Positions 3,030 through 64,000 are shown, counted from the first letter of the stretch. The stretch is 64,000 nucleotides of DNA from Nageia nagi (GCA_050084985.1 JBITNC010000001.1:63488001-63552000); one strand, 5' to 3'. Notes: generated by a model not told the origin, from the sequence alone. Translations and numbers: made by a program.

Positions 3030-6000
3030 CCCTTGAGGGCAACCTCACCAACTTGATAGCATCCCTAAGCTTACAAAACTGAGCTTCAAAAAGGGGCTTG
3101 CTGAACAAGTTAGCAGAGGTCAAGGTGGACAATACTCTAGGTGTATGATGCCATCATGAACCTTCTCCATGATAAAATGGGCCTATATTTCTTCATGTTT
3201 TATTTTTTAATGGAACATAAGATTCTTAGCCAAAAAAATAACTAATTGATTATCTAGAAAAATTAGAGATGAGCCAACTTATTCATACCTAATTTCTTCT
3301 AGAAGATACCTTAGCCAAATAGCTTCCTTGGTTGCAATAGACATTACACAATATTCAGCTTCTATGGTGGAAAGTGAAATAGTAGGCTACTTCTTACAAG
3401 CCCAAGAGATAGCACCTGAACCAATGCTAAAAACATATGCAGAGGTTGACTTCCTATCATCTCTATCTCCCTCATAGTTAGAATCTAAGAACCCTAAGAG
3501 GACAAACAAGGGCAACTTGGAATACTTGAGAGTAAGATCCTTCATCCTTGTAATATACCTCAAAGATTTACTTAATAGCATTTAAGTGCTCAACATATGG
3601 TTTCTACATGAATCGTGCCATCAAATTCACTGCAAAGGCAATATCTGGCTTGGAAATAGTCAAATACAGAAAACTACCAATTAATTGCCTATAAGTTGTA
3701 GCATCAGCCAACTAAGAGTTGGAGCTAAGAGAAATAATGATTCTATGAGAGATTGGGATTGAAACATGTTGACACTCCTCCATTCCAAACTTTTGCAAGA
3801 TGTCTAATATATACTTGGATTGATTGAGATAGGTACAATCCTTGTATTGATACACTTGAATTCCAAGGTAGTAGTGTAAGAGACCAAGATCAATCATTTC
3901 AAACATTGTCTTAAGTTTGGATATGCACTCTTAAATGATTTCATCATTATTCTTAGTAATCAAAATATCATCCACATAAAGAAGAATCAAGACCACAACT
4001 TTTTCTTGATTGAGCACATAAAAATCAGAGTCAAAAAAGCACTTGAAGAATCCAATGTTTGTAAAGTATCCTAAAATCTTCTTGTACCAAGCTCTTGGTG
4101 CTTACTTAAGTCCATACAATTAATTCTTTAGCTTGCACACAAAAGACTCTTTACCTTCTATAATAAACCCTTCTAGTTGATTCATGAAGATTTTCCACAT
4201 CCAAGCCACCATTAAGAAAAGCACTCTTAACATCAAGTTGAAAAACTTCCCATCTTTGAGCTGCTAAAAGAGAAAGAATTATCTCATAGAAGGCATCTTT
4301 GCTGTGGGAGCAAAGGTTTTCTCATAATCTACACTATATTTTTGAGTAAAAACTTTAGTTACTAACCTTGCTTTGAATTTCTCAATATCCCCAACTGAAT
4401 TGTACTTGACCTTGTAGATCCACTTATTGCTAATCATATTTTTCTCATTGGGATAAGGAACGAAGTTCCAAGTTTTATTTTTCATAAGCACCTTATACTC
4501 CAATTTCATGACTTTCATCCAACACTTGTGCTTAGAAGCTTATTTGAAAGATGAGGACTCATTCTTGTTATCAATATTAGCAAATAAGGATTTATTCAAG
4601 GTCATGCTTGTTATTACCTTTTATGTTGGAGAATTTGGCTCTTGAGATGACTTGTCTACATCAATATCTAACTAGCTAGGTGCAACTGATGAGTCATTTG
4701 AATCATCAACATCCTCATTAGAAGTAGATTCTTTAGGAAGTTCATTGAACTTTACATCCCTATAGATGAACACTCCTTTATACGATGGAGAGTAAAGCCT
4801 TTAGCCTCTATGCTGATTGTCATAACCCATAAAGATGTATTTTTTAGCTCTTTTGTCTAACTTTTCCTTTTTCTTAGAAATAATGTAAGAGAATGCTTCA
4901 TGAATGTTAGGTTTTCTTCTTGATCAAGCCTCAAAAGGAGTTTTACCATGAACAAATTTTATGGGACACCTATTCAAGGTGTAAATAGCAATGGTCACTT
5001 CTTAATCCCATAAGAAACTAAGAAGATTACCCAACATGCATCTACCCATCTTCATTATTATCCTATTTTTCCTTTCAGTAACATCATTTTACTGAGGAGT
5101 GTATGGAATTGTAAACTACCTCTTAATTCCATACTTAGCATAATAGACATTGAACTCATTGCTATTATATTCTCCCCCATTATCTGATCTCAACATCTTG
5201 ATTTTAAGGCTATTTTGATTTTCAACTAACGCCTTAAAATTCTTGAAAATCTTAAAGGTTTGATCCTTGTGCTTAAGAAGATAGCCAAATGTCATTCTAC
5301 TAAAATCATCGATGAAGGTCAAGATGTAAGATGCTCCTCCAAGCGACTTAGTCTGAAATGGATCCATCAAATCTGAATGCATAAGTTGAAGAGGTTGAGA
5401 TGATCTTGTTGCCTTATCTTTTTCTAACCTTTATCTATTCATCTTACATAAGATGCACTTCTCACGTAGACCAATTAAAAGTAAAATTGAAGGCAAACCT
5501 TCCACAAGTTCTTGGTCTTTCATGACTTGAATACTCTTGTAGTTATGGTACCCTAAATGTTGATGGAAAAGATTGCCTTTAGAACACACATTCATAACAA
5601 GACACATCTTTGTTAGAACTTGATCCACAATGAAAAAATCATCTTTCACTGAACCTTTAACCAATGTGGTAAGTCCTTTCTTAATGCACCAAGATTATGA
5701 GTTGAACTCGAATGAGAACCCTTTTCTTGTAGCTTGGATCACTTAGAGAAGATTCATCTTAAGCTTAAGAACATAGAGCATATTATCTAGAACCTTTCTA
5801 TGAATCAACACACTCCCAATGCCTTGGACTTCAAGGATAGACTTATCACCTATCATAACTGCATCTTTCTTATACTTGTGAAAGTTCTCAAAGTTATCTT
5901 TTTGAAAGCATAAATGATTAGTGCAACCAAAATCAACAATCCAATCAGATGAAAAAGTATGAGTCATGGAGTAGAGCACAACAACAACTCTAGCTTTTAA

Positions 6001-6936
6001 ATTCTTCTTCCTTTGAAGTTCTTTACATTGCTTTTATACTTTTCCTTTATTTTCTTTTCATAGCAATCAATTTCTTTATGACCATAGATGCCACAAAATT
6101 TATAATTCCCATTAGACTTTGCCTTAGGATTTGGTTTTCTTGCCTTACCTTTTCCATCTCTATGCTTGAAGAAGATGTTGTTTTCGTGATTATCATTGTT
6201 GTCATGGTTGCCATTGTTGCCATTATTGTTGCCTTTTTTTCAAACCTTTTAGAGGAAGAAGGATAAGATTTCTTATGATGATTGACCTTCTTCTTGAAAG
6301 GAATTTTGGTTGCTCTTAGAGAAACATTATTATCCTTTGTAGAAGAAATCAACATCTTTTTGTTAAGAGTTTCCTCATACTTTAAAAGGAGCCTAGAAAG
6401 ATTCTCAAGGGAGAAGACTTCTTCTTCATCATCAAGCCTAGTCTCAATTATTGGCATAAAGTTACCAAAATTTGAAGAAAGGCTTTAGAGAATGATAAAG
6501 ACCATGAACTCATCATTGATCCAATTACACCCACAAGTAAAAAGTTGGATACTAAGGTCAATGATTTTATTCAAGTAGATGGAAACACTTTCATCTTTCC
6601 CTTGACAAGATTGAAGCAACTTTTGGAGGATAGTAAACCTTCTAGAAAACTTAGATCTAAGATAAATCTTCTTAAACTTATCCCAAGCTTCCTTTGTTGA
6701 GGTTGAGCTTGAAATCATAAGGATCACATCATTTGAAATCATACAAAAAATCATAGAGGTTGCTAACTCATTTTTCATGTTGTATGCCTCAAGTGTCTTC
6801 TCATCTGTAGGAGCAACAAAGTCTTTATTTACTATTTGCAAAGCTTCCTTACTTGCAATTCAACTCTCATCAAAGGTTCCCAAATCTCAAATTTGGAACC
6901 GTCAAAAATGTGTTCGAGTAAAAAGGTGTCTCCCAT
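3030..6936 (-). pseudogene. Degenerate copia gag-pol of the outer element
   Basis: gag FDGSKFEIW, protease WIVDFGCTNH, integrase HSDL..DDFSR..SDNGGEY, RT KWIYKVK..KARLV and LYVDDI, RNase H DS..DRDDRKSTS; many stops and frameshifts. Confidence 0.92.
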
Positions 6937-8581
6937 TTGCTACATAAGAATGTGAATAAATAATAAGTATGTGGTTCAAAAAATAACATTACATGTTAAG
7001 TTTTAATCCAAGTAAATAATACATGTTAAAATTAACAAGGACATACTTGATTTGTTCCATAAAAGCAAATGTTTACAACTCAAATATACATCCCATGTAC
7101 CCAAATACCAAGAATCGTAGATGTAAAGTGACAATGTTGAGGCTTGTTTTCTTCTCTAAAATTAGGCCTTCACCTATATGCCCATAAGTTGGAGCGCAGG
7201 TACGACCAATCCTCAATCAGTTTGCCTTCGGTAATATTATACTCTCACAAGGAGAAGTACCTACTATTTTCCAAGGTTATGACATATATTGGATCGACCA
7301 AATTATTAATCTTGATTAGGTTTCAAATTATCCTCTTAAGTTACCAGGATAATCCCTAAATGGACATGTGGACATGTGGTATCACTACACACATGCCTGT
7401 CCACCTATTGGAGTTATATCTAGACCAATAGAGGACTTAAGGGCATTAATAAGCATAAACTTTTCACCATTTGGATCGTTAGACTTAAAGGCTCTAGTCT
7501 ACTGGTCTTCACCTCATGGCTCCCCAAAGAAGTCATCTTGCAAAATGTACATGCAGATGTGTTCATTTTAGGGGGTTGCTCATTTCAATGTTTGTGATTT
7601 TTGCATAAGTAAATAAAGCAAAAAATGCAAAACATGAAGTAAAAAAAATTAAAAATGAAACATCATTCATTCATAGCTTGGAACCTAAGAGACCAATAGA
7701 TTTTGTTTACTAACCCCTAAAGGACATATTTACATAGGTCCATAATTTGCATACGTTGACTTTGCATAAGAAAGGATAAATACTCAAGCATAAACATGCC
7801 TTGTTTCCATAATTTGCACAAGTCCATTTCATTCTTGTATAAGGAAGTAAAATGCATTATAACTTAAAATTTAAATAATAAACATGCATTATTCCTATAG
7901 ACAAAAATTATTCCATCTTTAAGCAAACATTTAAGAGGCATAAATATGCATTATTTCCTCAATTTGCATTTATCTATCACTTTACAAAATACTTAGCATG
8001 CATTATTTAAAAAATAAGAAGCATTCATCATATCCTATTTGCATTTAAAAAGGTAGATAGACATGCAATATCTAGATAAAATTTAAGTAAAAATTTATAC
8101 AATTTTCCCCGTCTTTTACTTAAAAATTTATCCCCTAAAGATAACATACTAGTTTTACCTTAGAAATTTAACTAAGAAAAAATAATACTTTTAACTAAGT
8201 AATTTTCATGTTAAAATTTATCTTCTAAGTTTTAAAAGATAAAGAAATACACTTAATATATATTTAAAAAAAGAATGATGACAAGCATTAATTTTGAAGG
8301 TAGAGTTTACTCCCAAGTATGATATAAAAAGGAACCTTTTTGATCAAGCATTAATTTGGAACTAGAGTTTTCTTCAAGTTACTTAAATAGATCATCATTT
8401 ATTTACCATAATTATTGCAAGAATTAAATGTAAATTAAAACTTGCACAAAACATTGAGAAATCGAAGTCATAAATTTTTTGTAATAAACAAGAAAGGGAT
8501 AGGTGCAAGAATGGCTATAGGGGAACCACAATGGAAGGAGAGAGAGTAGAGAGGTTTAGGAGAGCAACTAGGTGAAAGGAG

Positions 8582-9179
8582 TGAAGACAGTTTGTCAATC
8601 TCTGAATATAGATTCTAAAAACATTTACATATAGTTTTCCAACGTATGCCATTGAAGCAGTATGGATATCCATCAAGTAGTAATTATTGTGGATGTGAAT
8701 GCCTAATATTCATGTATGTAAAAATGAGGAATACACAAGGATCAGAATTATGATGTGTATAGATTCGTGGACTGTAGCAATGCATTGAAGACTTGAAATC
8801 ATTCCGATGTAATGACAAACTCTACATCCTTTACCAGCATTCCTTTTTGCATATCCACTGTGTGAACTAGTGAAGAAGGTATGAAGATCCAACAAAGCGT
8901 AGTTGGAATCGTTACACAGCGGATATTGTGGTAATTGAAGAATTATCAATGATAGGCGGAGATGGCACAAAGAACTATTGATGCAGATACCATTACATGG
9001 ATGGCAATAATCTAAGGATAATACACTTTCTAAAAAGGCTCATGAGACTTTTGAGTAGATGCAATTGTTTAGTGTAAAGTTAGACTCTACAATCTTTGCC
9101 AGTATTCTTCCAGCGAGCGTTGCTATGGGAGCTTGAGAGCAAGGTGTGGACGTCCGTTACAGTAGCTGAGTTGTCTACA
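8582..9179 (-). repeat. 3' LTR of inner copia element (PPR-derived sequence on + strand)
   Basis: TGAAG...CTACA; about 33 substitutions versus the 5' LTR by eye; + strand translates to PPR-like peptides (KAHETFE*MQLFSVKLDSTIFASILPASVAMGA*EQGVDV). Confidence 0.95.
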
Positions 9180-9189
9180 TTCTCCCCCT

Positions 9190-12100
9190 TGATGCAAAGA
9201 GGACTCACCATGGAGTCTCTGAGCATCACATACTGAGCTTTGACAACACCTTTTGTGAAAATATCAGCCAAGTTGATCTTGGTGTTGCAATAGTGAAGCT
9301 CAATTTGTTCCTTCTCCACCATGTCATGAATGAAGTGGTACTTGAGTTAGAAGTGCTTTGACCTATTGTGGTGGATGGGATTGTGTGCCAACTGAATGGC
9401 ACTTTGATTGTTACAGTAAAGAATTGTTGGTCCATGTTGTTTCTCACTAATTTCATCAAGTAGTTTCCTTAGCCATAAGGCTTGTGCACTAGCTGTGGTG
9501 AGGGCCATATACTCAGCCTCACAAGAAGAGAGAGCAACTGTAGATTGCTTCTTAGAACTCCATGTTATCATTCCTGAACTAAGTGAGAAACATTGCCCAG
9601 AAGTGGACTTCCTATCATCCAAATTACTACCCCAATCACTGTCACTAAAACCAACAAGCTTAAACTTTTCAACAGGAGAGTAGTGAAGACCATAACCGAT
9701 GGTACCTTTGACATACCTCAAAATGCATTTTACAGCCTTCAAATGCAAAATAGAAGGATCATTCATGTATCTAGATACCAAAGAGATAGCAAATTGTATA
9801 TGAGACCTAGTGTTGCAAAGGAACATAAGGCTGCCAACTATGCTTCTAAATTCTGTCACACTTGCTTTTGGAGCACCATCATCCTTACAAAGCAACTCAC
9901 CATGAGCTACAGGATTGTGAATAGTAGTACAATTCATTATACCATACTTGGAAAGCATGTCCCTTGCATATTTACTTTGACAAACAAAAATCTCTTCTTG
10001 ACATTGGTGGACCTCCATGCCAAGAAAGTACCTCATAAGGCCCAAATCCTTCATTTCAAACTCATTCATCAAATCAATCTTAAATTTGTTGTTCAAGATG
10101 GGATCACTTCCCATATATATCAAATCATCAACATAAAGAGAAACAAGCAAAATCTGATTACCTTCTCTCTTGATGTAGAGTGTTGGCTCATTCTTGCTCC
10201 TCATGAGTCCAAAATTCTGAAAGTATCCATCTATGCGAGTGTACCAAGCTCTTGGAGCTTGCTTAAGACCATACAAGGCCTTCTTGAGTTTGTACACATG
10301 ATGTTCTTTGCCTTGCACTTGAAAACCTTGAGGCTGATGTACAAAAACCTCTTCATCCAAGTAACCATTCAAGAATGCACTCTTCACATCCATGTGGTAA
10401 ACACTCCAATGGTTTTGGGCAGCCATTGAAAGGAGCAACCTTACTGTTTCTTGCCTTGCAACCGGTGCAAAAGTCTCTTCAAAGTCTACACCATGTTTTT
10501 ATGTGAAGCCTTTAGCAACCAATCTCGCTTTGTGTCTCTCTATGGTACCATCACTGTTGTACTTGGTCTTGTAGACCCACTTGGAGCCCACACACCTCTT
10601 TCCTTTGGGCAACTCACAAAGTTCCCAAGTGTCATTTTTGTTTATGGAGTGAAGCTCCTCTTGCATAGCCTTCACCCACACATTTTTGGTGCAAGCTTCC
10701 TCATAACAAGATGGATCAAAAACAGAAATATTAGTATTTTGGGCTGCACATAAAGCATAGTTCACCATCTCACCCTTTGGATCCTCATCAAGTTCCATAT
10801 TGCTAAATTGCTTACCATTTCATGAAATTGACTTCTTGTTAATCTTTGCTGGAAATTTTGATCTAAAACTTGAGAAGGAGGATGGTTTTGAAAGTGTCTT
10901 TTACCTCTCTTGGTCTTCATCACTTATTGGATCACACTTGGAGAGCCACCACTTGAAGGTGAGCTTGGAGTGGATTTTGAGCTTTGAGATGGACTTGATG
11001 GAGGACTTGGAGGCATCACTTGGAGGTTTGGAAGAGAATTTGATCTCTTGGGCTACACATTCTTTGTTTGTGAAGTATCTTCATGGCTGGTCACTCCTCC
11101 TCAAATGTTTGCAATGCATTTTTGCTATTGTCCATACACTTTCTCCTCCTCAAAAATGACATCCCGGGAGACAAGTGTTTTCTTGGTTTTGGGGTTGTAA
11201 AGCCTATATGCTTTACTCTCATCACTGTATCCAATGAACACACATGGTTCACTCTTTGCATCCAACTTTTTTCTATGCTCCTTTGGCACATGAGCATATG
11301 CCAAACACCCAAAAACTCTGAAATGCTGGACAGTAGGCTTCTTATCATACCAAGCCTCATAGGGGGTCTTACCTTCAACGACACTAGTGGAACACCTATT
11401 CAAGATGTAGTTTGTTGTCTTTACCGCTTCAACCCAATACATGTAATGCAATTTTTTGGATTGCATCAAACATCTTGCCATCTCCATGAGAGTTCTATTC
11501 TTCCTCTCTGCCACACCATTTTGTTGAGGAGTATAGGCTATAGTAAATTGTCTTTTGATGCCATTTTGCTTGCAAAACTCAAAAAAATCAGTAGAAGAAT
11601 ACTCTCCTCCTCTATCACTCCTCACACATTTAATCTTATGTTCACATTCATTCTCAACCATCTCTTTGAATTCTTTAAAAAACTCAAATGCTTCATCTTT
11701 ATGCTTCAAAAAATAGACCCAACACATTCTACTAAAATCATCAATGAAGGTGAGAAAATAAGAACTCATACCAAGACTTTTGTTTTGCATTGGTCCACAT
11801 AAATCAGTATGAACCAACTGTAGTGGGAATGAGGCCCTCCATGCTTTCCCATGATCAAATTTCTGCCTTGTTTGCTTGCCCAACAAACAACCTTCACAAA
11901 CTAATTTTGGATTTTCAACAAGAGGTAAACCATGAACTAGCTCATGAGATAGTTTCAAACTACTGAAATTTACATGTCCAAATCTAAGATGCCATAACCA
12001 AGACTCATCTTTAACAGCCACATTTGTAAGAATATTATCCCCCTTTTCTCCAAGTTTCAATGGGAATAAACGATTTGGAGACATTTTAACAGTAGAAACT

Positions 12101-13368
12101 AACTTATGCCCATGGTTCTTATCAAAAATTTCACACTTACCCTCATCAAAGACTAGCTTGTAGTTATTTTCCAACATTTGCCCAATACTCAACAAACTAT
12201 GAGCCATATCCGGAGTGTGATACACATTGTGCATCTTCTTCATCCCATGCTTGGTAGGCACCTCAAGCATGCCTTTGCTAGCCACCTCAATTGCAGAATT
12301 ATTGCCAAGCTTGATACTTGACTTGTAGGAATGGTCCATGGATGAAAGTAGCTCCCCCTTACCGGTCATATGGTTTGAACATCCAGAGTCCAACAACCAA
12401 GTCTCCTCTTATTTTGCTTCAACCATATGGGCTGTCTCCTCCATGGAAAGAAAGAGAGTTTCACCATACTCTTCTTCCTCTCCATAATTTACCACTTTTC
12501 CATCACCATTTGCAGCTTGTTTTACTCTACACTCCCTTGCATAATGCCCATACTTGTTGCAGTAGTAACATTGAGCATTCCTCTTGTCACCATTGCTTTT
12601 ACCTCTTCCTCTTGTGTTGGAATAGCCTCCTCTTCCTCTACCTCTACCTCTCCCTCTTTGCTGGCCTCTACCTCTGCCTCTACCTTGTCCATTTGAGCTA
12701 GAATCACCTTCTTTTGCAGCAAAGGCTTTCTCCTCTTTACTGGATTGGACTGGTTCATCATCAACCATTTCTTCATGAGATATAAGGCAACCAATGAGGG
12801 AATCTATCTCCATTTGAGAGAGTTCTTTTGTCTCTATCAATATCACAGCAATGTGATGCCACTTCTTGGTAAGAGATCTTAGAATTTTTTTGATTACAAT
12901 GGCCTTCTCCAAGGTCTCTCTAAGAGTTAGCATTTTGTTCACAATCTCTTTCACTCTAACACAATAATTTGAAGCTTTTTCACTCTCCTTCATTTTTAAA
13001 TTCTCAAATTCTATCCTTAGAGTCTACAATTTTACCTCCTTCACTTGATCACTCCCTTGGAATCCTACCTTCAACACAGCCCAAGCCTCTTTGGATATCT
13101 TGCAGCCTACAATTCTTGGAAAAATGCTCCTATCAAGAGCTGCTTGGAGATGAGACAGGGTAAGAGAGTTCTTGCTCCTACATTCCTTCATAGCTTTCTT
13201 ATCATCTGCTAAAAGAGAGCTCCAATCTGCTGGCTCTACATAGCCATCATCAACAACATCCCACAAATCTTTGCCAGTGAGCAAAGTTTGTATCTTGATG
13301 CTCCAATATCCATAGTCACTACCATCAAACTCTGGAATGGGAATGGATGAGCTTGTGTTGCTGGCCAT
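9190..13368 (-). pseudogene. Copia gag-pol polyprotein of the inner element, interrupted by a few stops/frameshifts
   Basis: FDGSDYGYWS gag start, RG-rich tract, zinc knuckle CYYCNKYGHYAREC, protease LDSGCSNHMTG, LWHLRFGH, integrase HTDLCGP/DDFSR/SDRGGEY/PQQNGVAERKNR, RT DVKSAFLNG and LYVDDL, RNase H SDSDWG..RKSTSG. Confidence 0.95.
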
Positions 13369-13475
13369 TATACCTGCAAACAAGAAACCAAAACACTACA
13401 AGCAACTTTTGTAATTGCTAGAAGCCACAGGCTTTCTCAAACCCAGCTTAGACCCCTCAATGCTCTGATACCAAG

Positions 13476-14073
13476 TGAAGATAGTTTGTCAATCTCTGAA
13501 TATAGATTCTAAAAACATTTACATATAGTTTTCCAACATATGCCATTGAAGCAGTATGGATATCCATCAAGTAGTAATTATTGTGGATGTGAATGCCTAA
13601 TATTCATGTATGTAAAAATGAGGAATACACAAGGATCACAATTATGATGTGTATAGATTCGTGGACTGTAGCGGTGTGTTGAAGACTTGAAATCATTCCG
13701 ATGTAATGACAAACTCTACGTCCTTTACTAGCATTCCTTTTTACGTATCCACTGCGTGAACTAGTGAAGAAGGTATGAAGATCCAGCAAAGCGTAGTTGG
13801 AATCGTTACACAGCGGATATTGTGGTAATTGAAGAACTATCAATGATAGGTGGAGATGGCACAAAGAACTATTGATGTAGATACCGTTACATGGATGACA
13901 ATAATCTAAGGATAATACATTTTATGAAAAGGCTCATGAGACTTTCGAGTAGATGTAATTGTTGAGTGTAAAGTCAGACACTGCAACCTTTGCCAGTATT
14001 CTTCCAGCGAGCGCTGCTATGGGAGCTTGAGAGCAAGGTGTGGATGTCCGTTATAGTAGCTGAGTTATCTATA
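13476..14073 (-). repeat. 5' LTR of inner copia element (PPR-derived sequence on + strand)
   Basis: Direct repeat of 8582-9179; terminal CA mutated to TA; PBS adjacent; + strand reads VKSDTATFASILPASAAMGA*EQGVDV. Confidence 0.95.
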
Positions 14074-15276
14074 GGGAGGAAGGAGCTATTGATGAGGATT
14101 AGGCAGAGGCATGAGGCCTTGGTGGAGAGTGAGGCGGCTAGGAGAGGTCATGACGGAGGTCATAGGGCATTTTAGCACCCCCTCCCCCTGTGTAAAGACC
14201 AAGGAGTAGATGGTGCTAACCATCATCTCCTTAAGATAGAAGCACTAATCATACCCCCCCAAATTTGAATTATTGCATACAAAAAAGAAACACAAGGAAA
14301 GGTTGAGTTGGAGTCAAGCCATGCAAAGAGGAGGGAAGCCATGATAAGAAGGGTACAAAAAAAATTTGAGAGTCACAAAAGAAAGAGGGAAGAGCTGATG
14401 ATTTCTCATGGCACTAGGCAGATGGTTGGGCCATGGGCAAGGATGGGTAGGAGAGTAGGAGCTAGACTACCCTCCCCCCCCCCCAATATTGTAATATATT
14501 ATAAAAAAGGAATATATAATATTGTATATATATAAAAGAAAACTACTCCCCATTGTACCATGTGGTCAAACAACCAAGAGATTTAAAGTATATACTATTT
14601 ACTATTTTTGAAAATAGTAAATAACCAAAAAAAAATTGGCCCCCCCTTACCCTTTTTTTGCATAAGTAAATAAAAGGTGTGTGTATGTGTGTGTGTATTG
14701 AAAAAAAATATTGCTCTTTTTCAAAAAATCAAACTTTGTAAAAAATAAACTTCATTTTTCTACAATATTTTATTTACAAAGTTATTGAGAAAATATATTA
14801 TTGACTATACATGAAGTGGAAAATATAATATGTTAACTTAAAAAAACATTGGTTGATAATATACATAAAAAGGTTAATAATGTATGACAATTATACATTA
14901 TTATATCGAATTGATTTCTTCAAACAAATGCAACTAACAAAAAATGTTAGTATATACAAATTACCTATTTTGCCTAATGTATTATTGCTTAATTACTAAT
15001 ATAAAATATTGTAATTAGAACAAAAAATGAGCAATAATATATTATGTTATTGAGGTAATATTTGCTAAGAATTGAAGTAACATAATCATACAAGAATGTT
15101 GGTATCAAAGTTAACAAAAAAAGGATAGGGAGTTATACCTCTAAGTCGTTTTACCTCAAGCAAGAAGAGTAAACCTCCAGAGATTATGAATAAGGACAAA
15201 GAACCTCCAAAAAGTTGAGGAGGATCTTCCACACCAAGGATGTGAAGAGGAGCTTCCAAGGAGCTCTGATACCAAA

Positions 15277-15778
15277 TGAAGGGATTGCAATATAACATAA
15301 GCAACCCTATACTACCAAGATCTTGTGAAAGCTCAATCTCACATCTAAATAACTTAAAGAAGACAATCTCAAAAAGATAAATCAAAATATAAAGTGGTTC
15401 CTCCAACTAGGAGTACATCCACTAATAAGATCTTACTTCATTCACAAATATGAACCTCTTACAATTCTCCTAACTCATCTCCTAAACACTATCCTATAGC
15501 ATAACTTTACTTCTCAAATTGGTGTGTAATCACAAAGAGGGAGCCTTTTATTTATAGCCCAAAATCCCTCTTTGGATCACCCTTTTATCCAATGTACAAA
15601 AGCATGACATGCACTCCCTTTTACCCAAGAGGCATGCTTATAACATGGAGTGTAGGACAAGTTACATTATCATATTCACTTGAATACTTAAGGTATCTAA
15701 TGATACCTTTAAGTATTAGTGAATTTACAAAGAGGATTATTACAAAACCTTTACATCAAGGCATTATACATTCCAACA
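15277..15778 (-). repeat. 5' LTR of outer copia element
   Basis: Direct repeat of 1782-2281; PBS adjacent. Confidence 0.93.
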
Positions 15779-16678
15779 AATTTACCATAAATATTTGAAA
15801 GAACACAAGATTAAGCATTTGTAGGCTCTAACAAAAGAAGGATCGTTGCCATAAATTTCGTTATTCCTAAATTTTTATGTGATCTACAAGCATCAAGCAA
15901 ACACATCCACACTTCCAATTCAGGTTTTATGGGCATCTTAATAATGAAGTTCAAAGCTTCCTCGAGATAGCCTACTCCTACTCGATTAACAAGGTAAACA
16001 ATGCATGTATAATGATTCATCCCAAGAGTAATACAGTAAGAGTCACCCATGCTATTAAATTATTTACAACTCTCATCTACCAAACTTGCATGGTTGCATG
16101 CAATTAGAACATATATAAAGGTTATGTTGTCAGGGTTAGTTACCAAGTGCTTCATTAGACCAAAGAGCTTAAGGGTATTGTTGTTGTAGCCATAAAATAT
16201 GCATGTATAATGATTCATCCATCAGACCTATATGGTTGCATGTAAGTAGAATACATACGAAGGTTATGATATTAGGAATAATACAGTAAGAGTCACTCAT
16301 GTTGTTAAACTATTTACAACCCTCATCTACCATACAACCCTCATCCACCATACTTGTATGTCTGCATGTAAATAGAACACATACAAAGGTTATGCTATTA
16401 AGTTTTAAGGTTGGTTACCAAGTGCTTCATCAAACCACAGAGATCAAAGGCATCCTTGTTGTAGCCATGAACTGCATATCCTTTAATCATTATAGTCCAT
16501 GAAGCTATGTTTGCAACATGCATCTTATCAAACAATTCTTGGGCCTTATCTATTCTTCCACATTTTGCATGCATGTATATCAGAGCATTCACAACCATAA
16601 CAGTTGATGAAAAACCATTTTCAACTACTCCTTGATGGATGCCTATACCTTTTTCTAGAGCTTCCATGGTGGCACATT
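15779..16678 (-). pseudogene. Fragments of a PLS-E class PPR gene (upstream part of the scrambled pseudogene)
   Basis: CATMEALEKGIGIHQGVVENGF (L), VVNALIYMHAKCGRIDKAQELFDKM (S), SWTIMIKGYAVHGY (P2), repeated ITFVCVL..C.H..(L/M)VDEG (L2), NHYTCIV...GYLEEALNFIIKMPIKP (S2), VWMCLLDACRSHKN (E1). Confidence 0.88.
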
Positions 16679-16799
16679 CATAACTATAATAAATAAATAA
16701 ATCATAAATAATATATAAATAATAATAAATAAATAATAAACTAAAATAAATCATATCTTTATTTAAAAAAAAAAAAATCAATGCTATACTAGATGTAAT

Positions 16800-17264
16800 G
16801 CAATCCTTTGAATTTGAGGTTGTACAAGATGTCACATCCAATAATATTGCACTTCAAATTGTCTATATAAGATGTTATTTTTGATGATTTTGTTGATGCA
16901 AAAAGATGCCATGGATGATGCTTTTTAAGATGCTAAATGCCTCTAAAAGTGATGTAAAAGGATGCCATACATGACACCATATTGGACTATATAATTGATA
17001 TAATAATCGATGCTAAATGATGCAATAGATAATGCTATAATAGATGCTAAGAATCTATATATTGGACATTAATATATATGTAAAGCATATGCTAAAATGG
17101 ACACTAAATGGTGTCCTTATTGATGTCAAAGGATGCTATCTGAATTTTTAGTGACAATGCCCGCTATAACATATTGATTAGCATCGTACTATGCTTAGGA
17201 AAAAAAATAAAAATAAAGGAAAATGACACTAGTTAGGATGTTATTCCCCTTTGTTGTAGTAGTG
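16800..17264. mobile_element. Probable CACTA (En/Spm) transposon terminus with subterminal repeats
   Basis: Ends in ttgttgtagtagtg (reverse complement CACTACTACAACAA), preceded by many GATGCTA/GATGCCA-type short repeats. No partner TIR seen in the window. Confidence 0.5.
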
Positions 17265-19659: not shown

Positions 19660-20112
19660 TTGAACTAGTTGCATGTGTAAATATGTCATACTAGTTGCAT
19701 GTGTATATGGGATTGTATGTGTTACAGAGTATTTAGTATCAAACTAGTTGCAAAGGATTTGAAATCGACTGCATGTGTAAATATGTCAAACTAGTTGCAT
19801 GAGTATATGGTGTCATACCAATTGCAAAGTATGTGGTATCAAACTAGTTGCATAGTGTATGTTGTTGAACCATTTGTAGAGTGTGTGGTGTCAAATCGGT
19901 TATAGAGTATGTGGTGTCGAATTAGTTGCAGAGTATTTGGTGTCAAATTGGTTGTAGAGTGTGTGGTGTTGAACTAATTACAAAGTATTTGATGTTGAAA
20001 TAATTGCAAATTTTGTAGTGCCAAATTGGTTGTAGAGTGCATGTTGAAAATTAGTTACAGAGTGTTTGGTATCAAAATAGTTGCATAAATGTGGCATTGA
20101 ATTGGTTGCAAA
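19660..20112. repeat. Degenerate 26-bp minisatellite (~15 copies)
   Basis: Consensus approx. GAGTATGTGGTGTCRAAYTRGTTGCA in tandem. Confidence 0.85.
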
Positions 20113-22066: not shown

Positions 22067-22497
22067 TGAAAGCTCACAATTACATCAAACAAACTCACAA
22101 AGCAATCTCACAACACAAGATGTAAGCGGTTCCTCCAACTAGGAGTACATCCACTAACTAGATCTTTACTTCAATCACAAATATAACTCTCTTACGATTC
22201 TCCTAATCTCAACTCCTACACTTCTATCCTATAGCATAACTTTACTCCACAATTGGTGTGTAATCACAAAGAGGGTGCCTTAATCCCTCTTTGAATCACC
22301 CTTTTATCCAATGTACAATAGCATGACATGCACATCCTTTTACCCAAGGGGCATGCTCATGACATGGAGTGTAGGACAAGTTACATTATCATATTCACTT
22401 AAATACTTAAGGTATCAAATGATACCCTTAAGTATTAGTGAACTTACATAGAAGATTTAATACAAACCTTTACAATAATGCATTATACATTCCAACA
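22067..22497 (-). mobile_element. Solo/truncated LTR related to the outer copia LTR family
   Basis: Aligns with 1830-2281 (ggttcctccaactaggagtacatccactaa ... cattatacattccaaca). No PPT/PBS beside it; left boundary and TSD not resolved. Confidence 0.85.
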
Positions 22498-40372: not shown

Positions 40373-40753
<381 letters not shown>

Positions 40754-41959
40754 TAATTTCATACAAAATGCTTGCGACAGCAATGTACTTTTATGCTCGT
40801 CAATAGCCATTGCTGACTTTCAGTTATTTGAAATTCGTTCCAAGAATACTTCTGAAGTGTCATGGGTCTACCGAGTTTAAATAATTTATTTGCAAAGGGT
40901 AAGACTAGGATAGCTGAACCAGTCTTTATGAATGCATGTGTGTTCTTTATACTGCATAACATATTTTTTTGAAGGGTAAATTGAGAGTTTTTTTATACAG
41001 AAACCCAAATCCTGTATTTACATTGAGATTTTTGCCAAAAAACTGTAAGGTCACAGCAAACCTGCAGCAATACAAAAAGGAGCTGGTGCCATAAAAAATA
41101 AGTCAAACTATCAAGACCAGAATAGACCATCTATGCAAACTTTCTATCTTGTTTATTTTTTCAGCTGCATCTACATTTGACACATTTGAAGCATTCTTTT
41201 GCTTAGAGAGGGAATTTCACTCTCTAATGTTTTAAATCGAAATCTTCATTTGCAGCTTCTTGATATTGCATAATGTTCATGGGTGCAGCTTGATTGGATT
41301 TTTTTAAAAATTCATGGAATCAGAAAATAGTAGAGTATGTCACATTTCATTAAACACAACCTGCATTGTAATATGCAAGAATATAGACATTTAACTGTGC
41401 ATGTTTGCACAAGCTCCTATAATGATATTCAATGAGGGCTTCGTATATTGGCTTACTATCAAGTATATGAGTTGTTTCTTTAGTACAGCCAGTTTGTCAT
41501 ATATAAAATTCTTCATGTAATTATTATAATTTTTGACAATGTTCACCCAACTTGGCCAAAATACAAATACGGCTGACATCTATCAACAGATAATTGATTA
41601 CTGGATTAATGTATATAAGTAGAGAAAGGCTTCATGAATAGGCTTACTATGAATACATCTCTCTTTGCGTACAGGTGTAAGTAAAGCTCATATGTATTGC
41701 AACTGATGTTGTTGAAAGTTGATTGCATGGAAATCTAGAAAAGAAGATACCTATTACTAAAAAGATTGCTAGTGTGTGTTTGTGCCAAGAAGGATGGCCC
41801 CGGTAGGAAACTATTACTTATGTGATGACATGTACAAACACACACCCACTCCTCACCAATTAATTAGTAAAAGTACAAATGGATGCAATCAAAGAATGGA
41901 AATATAAATCATTTCATGATCTATTTCACAACTTGGCCACACTGTATAATACCATTTTG

Positions 41960-61499: not shown

Positions 61500-64000
61500 C
61501 CTCCCACTCCCATTTTCGTTCAGTCCCAAGCTGTAGAAGAGGAATTAGAAACTCTTGATGCAGAATTAGCAGAACTTTGGGCATCATACGAAGCCATGCC
61601 TGAAGGGTTTAAGGCTGCTGTAGATTTTGACAAACACTTGGAGTTAAAAGGGCATAAATGGGGAAGAAAAGCTCAAGTGGGAGGAGGAGACTTGCAACAC
61701 AAATTGGGTAAATTATAACTCCCATTATTTGATGGTAGTGACAAGATTTCTGCAAGACCATGGTTGTAGAAATTACAATCATATTTTGCTCTCAAACCTA
61801 CAGTGACAGAAAAGGAGGCTGCTCAATATGCAGCCCTTCATCTTGAAGGGGTTGCACATAAATGGTGGCACCATGGATTGCTCACACAAGGTTATGGAAC
61901 CATTGAATCTTTTGATGTGTTTGCAAATAAGCTATTGGACCGATTTGAAAGACAAGTTGAAAATGAATATCTTAGTGAGTTGGCCACTATTAGACAAAAG
62001 GGTTCAATTGCTAGTTATGTAGAAGATTTCCAACAAATTTCAGTCATGGTCATTGATATAGCTGGAAATAGAATTATTCACTTCTTTGTGAAGGGTTTGA
62101 ATGAACCTTTAAGATGTTGGTTAAAGGCTTTCAAGCCTAAGAATCTAGATGAATCTGTTTCAACAGTGTTTGACCTTGAAAATTCCACACACAACAGTAA
62201 ACCCAAGTGGGGACAACCCTCTAAACTTGGACAACAATCCAAATTTGGGACTTCTAGGCCATCTTATACTGTTGGACAGCAAACAAATAAAGTGAACCAC
62301 CCAAAAACACAAATCAGCAAAGACCAAGGTTGGATGAAGCAACTAGGAAGGAGTTACAACAAAAAGGACTATGTTATTTTTGCAAAAACCAATGGAGGCC
62401 TGGTCATCAATGTTAGGGTAAAGGGCGAAATTATTTAGTGGAGTTTTATGTGCCAGATGATGATGAAAAGGAATGAAAAATAGAAAAATCGGATTCCGAA
62501 ATTGAATACGAAGATGCAGATTTTGCTGAATTGGAACATGGGAAACCCACTCCTAAAATAGATGAAGAAGAGGGAACCTTGGCATCTTAATTGGTGAGTC
62601 AAAATTTTTAACCATTAAGGTGCTAGGAAAATTAAATAATTATCTGCTGTAGTATTAATTGATGGAGGAGCCACTCATAATTTTATTGATGAGGGTTTTG
62701 TGTTTGAAAAAAATATTAAAACTGAAAAATTTTCTGGGTTTGGTGTCAAGAATGGAAATGGAAAGATTACTAGGTGTGATCAAATGGTTAGGCAGATAAA
62801 AGTCAGCTTTGGTGAATATTTGTTACTGGAAGATTTTTGTGTATCCTATGGGAGGTGCCCCTCAAGCCATCATGGGGGTGCAATGGTCGTACTCATTAGG
62901 AGGAATCTACACCAACTATCAAAAGTTGGAGATGCAATTTAGACATAATTGTAAGGTGGTCACCTTGAAAGGGTTGAAGGACCAACACTAAGCAAATTTC
63001 AGCCAATAGGTTGGAAAAGATACTCAAGAAGAGGGACATTGAATGGGGGGCCACATTGCACCTGCTTAAAGGTATGCCTACATCATCAAAAATTGAGGTA
63101 AAATTCCACCCTGATATACAATGCATTGTAGATAAACATAGGAAGGTTTTTGGTTAATTACCTTGGGGTCTTCCACCTGATAGAGGTTTTGAGCATGCTA
63201 TAGAATTGGAACCTGATGCTAAACTTGTTATAATCACACCATATAGGTACCCTAGAGCTTACAAAGATTAAATTGAAAAGAGTATTAAGGAGTTACTTGC
63301 CATGCGTCATATTAGGCCTAGCTCTAGCCCTTTTGCCTCTTCAGTTGTACTTGTTAAAAAAAAAGATGGGACATTACGTATGTGTATATATTATAGGGCC
63401 TTGAACAAAAAGACCATAAAAACATGTATCCAATTCCTAGAGTTGATGAGTTAATAGATGAGTTGCATGGGGCTACTTCTTTTCCAAGGTGGACTTAAGA
63501 TAAGGCTACCATCAGATTAAAGTAAGGAATGAAGATGTGCATAAGATTGCTTTTAGGTGTCATTTTGGGCACTTTGAATTTTTAGTCATGCCTTTTAGCC
63601 TTACTAATGCACATGCCACTTTTCAATCAGCTATGAACCATATTTTTAGAGATCACCTTAGAAAATTTATTTTAGTTTTCTTTAATGACATCTTGATTTA
63701 CAACAGAAATTGGAAAAATCATTTACAACATTGGGACACAGTTTTGACTGTTTTGGAGCAGCATAAATTCTTTGGAAAAATGTTTAAGTGTGAATTTGGA
63801 CTTACATAAATTTTGTATCTTGGGCACATAATTAGTGCGAATGGTGTGCATGTAAATGAGCAGAAAATTTCTGCTATGAAAAGTTGGCCTACACTCACCT
63901 CTTTGATTGAATTAAGAGGTTTTTTGGGCTTATGTAGTTATTATAGAATATTTATTAAAGAGTTTTCACAATTAGCAGTCCCGTTGATTGATTTGACAAA
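61500..64000 (+). mobile_element. Decayed Ty3/gypsy (chromovirus-like) gag-protease-RT, continuing past the window end
   Basis: gag LP.FDG / LHLEGVAHKWW / IRQKGSIASYVEDF, CYFCKNQWRPGHQC knuckle, protease [69 protein letters not shown]; many stops. Confidence 0.93.

Follow-up and report, generated by a model that had tools for sequence, protein, structure and literature searches.

The stretch of DNA analysed here (the window) is a single strand of 64,000 nt from Nageia nagi (JBITNC010000001.1:63488001-63552000), and all coordinates, including those of the pseudogene-derived pentatricopeptide repeat (PPR) tract described below, are counted from the window start. A copia element occupies 8582-14073 on the minus strand. 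Judged by its sequence, this copy can be assigned to a very abundant conifer Ty1/copia family, with long terminal repeats (LTRs) whose interiors are foreign to that family. A repeat search combined with pairwise alignment identified the two direct repeats that bound the element as its LTRs and returned the same limits, 8582-9179 and 13476-14073, as had been proposed in the original prediction. The LTRs are 94.5% identical; of 598 aligned positions 33 differ, all by substitution and none by insertion or deletion (29 transitions, 4 transversions), for a Kimura two-parameter distance of 0.058. At 2.2e-9 per site per year, a rate often applied to conifers, this divergence would place the insertion about 13 million years ago. 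TG..CA ends are present, the right copy ending in TA through a transition, and the flanking pentamers AGGAG and GGGAG agree at four of five positions, where agreement at four or more has a chance probability of about 1.6%. Pfam domains follow the Ty1/copia order on the minus strand, with gag preceding the integrase region and then the reverse transcriptase (RVT_2); no separate protease was detected by Pfam beyond the Pol beta-barrel domain. The reading frame is broken at least four times by stops and frameshifts, and this copy is therefore no longer coding-competent.

Twenty public runs, from some ten organisms and two air metagenomes, hold between a quarter and a half of the words of the stretch, some of them comprising only 30-500 million letters. 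We placed contigs, not raw reads, from four such runs on 8400-14300. Over the internal region (9165-13481) the summed depth reaches 10^4-10^5 in three DNA runs, with contigs up to 97-98% identical to the studied copy, as against a depth of about 0-70 over the LTR interior in the same runs. Contigs of the family stop sharply at 9165 (runs X3 and X9) and at 13481, where they run on into different sequence. Across 1-2 nt at either junction, an identity of about 97% is lost altogether, with the PPR tract reaching to 9163 and the family terminus starting at 9165. The abruptness of this loss implies that the LTR interior was replaced rather than diverged, and gradual divergence of the abundant family's LTR is rejected by the same passage from 97-98% identity to none at both ends.

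The normal LTR of the family is represented in a metagenome contig (Ga0115848_101558, hereafter L001) that was found with a 28-nt pattern spanning the junction of polypurine tract (PPT) and LTR. L001 holds an internally deleted member of the same copia family, 91-96% identical to the studied copy over 2.2 kb of internal sequence, with an LTR of 528 nt (L001:6428-6955) whose start is repeated at the contig end. Its PPT and primer-binding site (PBS) are identical to those of the studied copy, and the PBS motif, which we take to pair with initiator tRNA-Met, recurs also in a second copia element of the window. In contrast, what the L001 LTR and the studied LTR have in common when aligned is limited to 15 nt at the start and 6 nt at the end: the interiors have no detectable homology (local score 19-21, shuffles 20.8±2.4), the normal LTR is 46% GC and the studied one 37%, and neither strand of the normal LTR resembles PPR sequence (27.3 and 25.9, both at background). 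By the 80-80-80 rule, the internal region has at least 80% identity with the abundant conifer copia and the LTRs do not. The proposal that the LTR had been almost wholly replaced is thus strengthened by comparison with its normal counterpart, and at least 479 of the 577 replaced nucleotides correspond to a decayed PPR fragment of the PLS class, antisense to the element.

As a separate observation, the copia derivative in L001 (L001:6428-9279) lacks most of the integrase and part of the reverse transcriptase, and its deletion joints (10788>12051, 10104>10576 and 9466>9806 in window coordinates) are common to L001 and run X3. All three joints occur at depths of 490-1360 in X3 and the deleted derivative is therefore itself multi-copy, probably a non-autonomous subfamily.

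The case for PPR origin was built on 150 PLS-class PPR proteins, gathered with the 147-residue open reading frame (ORF) of a PPR pseudogene at 15724-16964 as query. Among these, the proteins nearest to the LTR come from Cryptomeria japonica, in one of which (P0023) E, E+ and DYW domains come after the PPR repeats. In tblastn searches the 150 proteins matched the plus strand at 9017-9163 and 13911-14057 with 43.5-45.8 bits, compared with a mean of 22.2 and a maximum of 30 bits over 600 dinucleotide-shuffled strands, about 20 bits for reversed LTRs and 23-27 bits for the minus strand. Because frameshifts break ordinary alignments of this sequence, in-frame tblastn by itself picking up only 9017-9163 within the 3' LTR, we wrote a frameshift-tolerant local alignment. 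With it, the whole LTR scored 130-132 against ten PPR proteins (shuffles 42-43±4.7), and the stretch 8801-9016 alone scored 68-70 against single proteins (shuffles 37±4) and was also significant in the profile version of the alignment. For the latter, a 101-column P1-L1-S1 profile was built from the 150 proteins and tiled end to end; the 3' LTR scored 88.3 and the other LTR 84.5, against 27.8±4.4 for shuffles and 26.8±3.7 (maximum 40.4) for 388 window-strands of 600 nt of real sequence taken from the same window. The original prediction had named shuffled and reversed LTRs as the comparison on which a PPR origin should stand or fall, and in both tblastn and profile scores the match withstands it.

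The profile traceback is an unbroken alignment over 8778-9154 (138 profile columns, at the cost of 5 frameshifts, 2 deletions and 3 stops) that runs through the second half of P1, then L1, S1, P1 and the start of L1, in the P1-L1-S1 order and with the spacing of about 35-35-31 residues. The tract is also colinear with single stretches of Cryptomeria japonica PLS and PLS-DYW proteins; residues 694-823 of P0007, for example, match 117 codons of 8803-9154 with 41% identity, 3 frameshifts and 3 stops. Towards the other end of the LTR the protein signal weakens, 8584-8800 scoring 41 against single proteins (shuffles 37.6±4.3, not significant) and only marginally in the profile alignment, where 6 of 300 shuffles reach its score. 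Within this stretch the S1 motif at 8685-8749 is recovered solely through comparison at the DNA level with the window's own PPR pseudogenes (blastn E 6e-5; Smith-Waterman score 51, where shuffles give 23.6±2.5 and none of 200 gets as high). The resulting tract of 479 nt, 80% of the LTR, is frameshifted and stop-ridden and has the motif order S1-P1(partly deleted)-L1-S1-P1-L1(start). The original description of nearly the whole LTR as PPR-derived thus stands for 8685-9163 and is not borne out for the first 103 nt (8582-8684), which are at background in each comparison, as is the slightly longer 8582-8690: 53 of 300 shuffles in the protein-profile comparison and 19 of 200 in the DNA comparison reach the score observed for 8582-8684, and the peptide pieces DSK-TFT..FPTYA and LKQ-MDIHQVVI, previously read there as PPR motifs, are not confirmed.

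The tract is best described as a pseudogene fragment and not a gene, since it has 3-4 stops, 3-5 frameshifts and several deletions and includes neither an intact open reading frame nor a C-terminal E or DYW part. It is confined to the LTRs, because the flanks of the element are at PPR background in profile scoring. In the 5' LTR, contigs of run X13 match only 13966-14007 of the LTR, at no less than 88% identity over about 40 nt, and are flanked by other PPR-coding sequence. These contigs, which are possibly RNA, run on at both sides as, for instance, ETFKQIQLSG and CATTGALQEG; thus PPR genes keep the P1-end/L1-start stretch at 13966-14007 nearly unchanged in their DNA. PPR-family sequence also best accounts for the depth at 13916-14112, which is modest, and at 13719-13915, which is small. 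We also noted a minus-strand ORF of 86 codons kept in both LTRs (8710-8970 and 13604-13864), element-sense and antisense to the PPR tract, which is probably a by-product of PPR codon composition.

Could the resemblance to PPR proteins arise by chance or from base composition? Pfam found no match on the ten longest stop-to-stop pieces of the LTR, which are too short, and the first 103 nt are at background. For 8685-9163, however, the score lies some 13-19 standard deviations from dinucleotide shuffles and at more than twice the maximum of the 388 real control windows, the signal shows strand specificity, real PPR proteins run colinear with the tract, and the tract has DNA-level similarity both to PPR pseudogenes and, at 13966-14007, to the PPR contigs of the public run. 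Chance is refuted for this tract and we give it a negligible probability; having passed the shuffled, reversed, reverse-complement and real-sequence controls, 8685-9163 is assigned on these comparisons to a PLS-class PPR gene as its source.

Table 1. Features of the copia element and its LTRs, in window coordinates.
Feature	Position	Strand	Basis and remarks
3' LTR	8582-9179	-	598 nt, TG..CA; direct repeat and alignment; adjoined by PPT
5' LTR	13476-14073	-	598 nt; PPR tract inside at 13579-14057
Probable left target-site duplication, AGGAG	8577-8581		Sequence reading
Probable right target-site duplication, GGGAG	14074-14078		Sequence reading
First 15 nt of LTR, TGTAGACAACTCAGC (element strand)	9165-9179; 14059-14073 (with two transitions)	-	Identical to normal LTR start; X3/X9 contigs, L001
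Last 6 nt of LTR, TCTTCA (element strand)	8582-8587 and 13476-13481	-	Common to normal LTR; contig ends, L001 alignment
PPT, AAGGGGGAGAA	9180-9190	-	Sequence reading; abuts 3' LTR; conserved in L001
PBS, TGGTATCAGAGC	13462-13473	-	Sequence reading; 2 nt inside of 5' LTR
Decayed PLS-class PPR fragment	8685-9163	+	Sense on plus strand, antisense to element; tblastn, frameshift-aware alignments, DNA similarity
LTR stretch neither significantly PPR-like nor like normal LTR	8588-8684		97 nt; shuffle tests
Reverse transcriptase region (RVT_2), two ORF pieces	9347-10798	-	Pfam PF07727, E 1e-53 and 1e-10
Protease-side Pol beta-barrel, GAG-pre-integrase, integrase core and SH3-like domains	11125-12396	-	Pfam PF22936, PF13976, PF00665, PF25597
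Gag (copia-type) with zinc knuckle, two ORF pieces	12409-13383	-	Pfam PF14223, PF13961, PF00098

The capture of PPR sequence predates the insertion, as had been claimed: the frameshifts, deletions and stops of the tract are identical in both LTRs, each LTR has both family termini, the probable target-site duplication (TSD) matches at 4/5 positions and the flanks are not PPR-like. Since each LTR carries both termini together with the same PPR lesions, the chimeric LTR must have existed as a unit before integration. A simple insertion into U3 cannot explain its structure, because the long 3' half of the normal LTR has no counterpart here. We lean, with moderate confidence, towards an origin in a single cycle of reverse transcription, with two template switches through a transcript running antisense to a PPR pseudogene, and a resulting copy that is probably promoterless and low-copy.

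In such a cycle, minus-strand DNA synthesis would be primed normally at the PBS and, having entered U5 by no more than 6 nt, would depart from the element RNA, for instance where its 5' end was broken. An RNA that was co-packaged or close by, and that traversed a decayed PPR pseudogene in antisense, would then be copied for about 577 nt, before a return switch onto element RNA 15 nt from the U3 start allowed synthesis to proceed along the PPT and the internal region. Plus-strand priming at the PPT, followed by the second strand transfer, would take its normal course and place the chimeric block at both ends, and the cDNA, having kept the tips recognised by integrase, could integrate with a 5-bp target duplication. 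With the family promoter and R-U5 lost, the copy would most likely have been unable to propagate and have decayed in place over the roughly 10 million years since; a product lacking these elements fits the rarity of the PPR-derived LTR. Template switching is itself an established route to chimeric LTR retrotransposons, as in the BARE-2 LTR, Veju and complex Triticeae insertions (PMC13317346).

Several points weigh against this account. A switch only 6 nt into U5 would be an unusual event, no donor PPR pseudogene was identified, and 97 nt of the LTR (8588-8684) resemble neither PPR sequence significantly nor the normal LTR. A few low-depth contigs fall on the LTR interior; we take them for PPR-family sequence, but some could be further copies of the LTR, and since the public runs are far below 1x, 'rare' here means 'not high-copy' and not 'single'. 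In addition, the U5 end of one X13 contig matches the studied LTR at 18 of 30 positions past the shared 6 nt, a hint of multiple LTR variants in the family and of a possible exchange of LTRs with a relative.

An exchange of this kind is the main rival. It supposes that a distinct, lower-copy copia lineage already propagated with PPR-derived LTRs, in line with the original prediction, and that homologous template switching between co-packaged RNAs, near the PPT/U3 start and near the U5 end/PBS, gave these LTRs to the abundant family's internal region. The junctions do lie exactly at short conserved tracts around the PPT and PBS, the 18/30 match indicates that LTR variants exist in the family, the low-depth contigs on the LTR interior could be accommodated, and inter-element recombinants are well known (PMC13317346). 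We nevertheless regard it as unlikely, if a serious competitor: it requires an identical 15-nt U3 start in both lineages, it pushes the origin of a PPR-made LTR only one step back, and no second copy of this LTR is present in the window, in L001 or at appreciable depth in the four runs. Viral contigs scanned for the chimeric junction gave no match, as was to be expected.

A gradual route appears improbable. Here a PPR fragment would have entered U3 of the parent's 3' LTR and been copied to both LTRs in the next cycle, with R and U5 replaced later and a working LTR, complete with promoter and polyadenylation signals, evolving from antisense PPR sequence. It is established retroelement biology that U3 tolerates insertions and that its content is copied to both LTRs, and TATA-like strings occur near 8621-8633 on the element strand. 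In the absence of any counterpart to the long R-U5-like 3' half of the normal LTR, several independent replacements would be needed, and against this route stand also the lack of intermediates with a partly normal LTR and the rarity of the PPR-type LTR in the public runs. The presence of two PPR pseudogenes in the region, on the minus strand at 998-1685 and 15724-16964, raises the further question of an origin at the DNA level, in which a duplicated PPR pseudogene segment came to lie on either side of an LTR-less internal fragment, whether by segmental rearrangement or by a long target duplication, and the repeats were not made by reverse transcription. This is very improbable, given that the two family termini (15 nt and 6 nt) are found at the ends of each individual repeat, that the PPR-like tract stops short of either flank, that the local pseudogenes lie on the opposite strand and are only about 75% similar over short stretches, and that a probable 5-bp TSD is present. 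A long target duplication inside a PPR pseudogene is rejected by the non-PPR flanks and the family termini on each repeat.

Origin in a single cycle with two switches can be compared with known cases in which reverse transcriptase leaves the element RNA, copies a cellular RNA and returns, as in Ty1-mediated chimeric cDNAs and in retroviral transduction by non-homologous recombination. In those systems the cellular part lies between intact LTRs. Under the proposed route, it is the R-mediated first strand transfer that gives way to the detour, so that the cellular part becomes the LTR. Parallels from plants are the BARE-2 LTR with WIS-2 sequence, Veju_L and the Triticeae insertions, which likewise gained new sequence, the LTR included, by an RNA switch, and have two identical LTRs (PMC13317346). 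Their donor was another retrotransposon or is unknown and the family still propagates, whereas the sequence gained here came from a host PPR pseudogene and took the place of nearly the whole LTR, and the copy most likely did not propagate.

Capture of gene fragments by LTR retrotransposons is familiar from maize Bs1. It has been described for 425 maize elements (PMC2774510) and in rice and sorghum (PMC3726574), and about 400,000 gene fragments are held by transposable elements in each gymnosperm genome, their position inside LTRs not being reported (PMC13477047). The studied copy resembles all of these in that a piece of host gene lies within the bounds of the element and is mobilised along with it. 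In contrast to the described captures, where the fragment is internal or its position is unreported, the fragment here makes up the LTR, all but 21 nt of which were replaced, and the captured piece was an already dead pseudogene fragment in antisense orientation. Gene-fragment capture is thus already reported as massive in conifers, and near-complete LTR replacement is an unusual variant of it; in the literature covered by a limited search, which cannot prove absence, we found no description of a near-complete host-derived LTR on an integrated element.

We also considered whether the PPR-derived LTR might be functional. In that case promoter and polyadenylation signals would have arisen in antisense PPR sequence, a small lineage would have propagated, and its transcripts, antisense to the most conserved PLS motifs, would feed small RNAs that act on PPR genes or be targeted through them. 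If true, this would tie retrotransposon silencing to the RNA-editing factor family, and we judge it decidedly improbable. Nothing shows that the element moved repeatedly with its PPR LTR as a functioning family, as had been suggested, the LTR interior having almost no depth in the four runs by comparison with the hugely abundant internal region; nor do siRNA production, PPR-directed small-RNA cleavage and host mimicry gain specific support. Between the LTR and the two local PPR pseudogenes, exact matches all fall short of 12 nt. The identity with PPR sequence seen in X13 makes it conceivable that 21-24-mers cross-match in the best-conserved motif. Ordinary PPR pseudogenes, of which the genome has many, would have the same small-RNA effect as the LTR, and any small-RNA cross-talk between the LTR and PPR genes would presumably be incidental. 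No function is demonstrated for this copy and no regulatory link between transposons and PPR genes is shown.

Enclosing the studied element is another copia, likewise on the minus strand, with LTRs at 1782-2281 and 15277-15778 and a third, partial copy at 22252-22497. These LTRs are 500 nt long and 92-93% identical, with a clear CTATAAATA box; the PBS is at 15274-15263 and the PPT at 2290-2282. Remnants of gag and reverse transcriptase, at 6485-6841 (minus strand) and 4083-4181, have only about 73% DNA similarity to the reverse transcriptase of the studied element, and the outer copia is therefore of a different family. Its flanks are paralogous PPR pseudogenes (998-1685 and 15779-16964), and its flanking pentamers, AAATT and GAAGT, are mismatched, so that it may be the product of recombination between two elements. 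Elsewhere in the window, a tandem array at 19670-20060 has a 26-nt period and about nine or more units, 62-76% alike, with a 100-nt duplication ahead of it; a 120-residue ORF at 40394-40756 (plus strand) matches Lyase_1, of fumarate-lyase type (E 5e-7), and is probably a gene fragment; and a Ty3/gypsy-type gag ORF lies at 61803-62438 (plus strand).

The studied copy provides a natural case in which reverse transcription and integration were completed although nearly the whole LTR, comprising U3, R and U5, was unrelated host sequence. If one cycle of reverse transcription did produce the chimera, a detour through another RNA can stand in for the R-mediated first strand transfer, and the LTR tips, the PBS and the PPT would be enough for integration in a plant genome. 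Such an event would offer a concrete route by which host sequence enters an LTR, in conifer genomes where surveys of gene capture have counted fragments without resolving their position.

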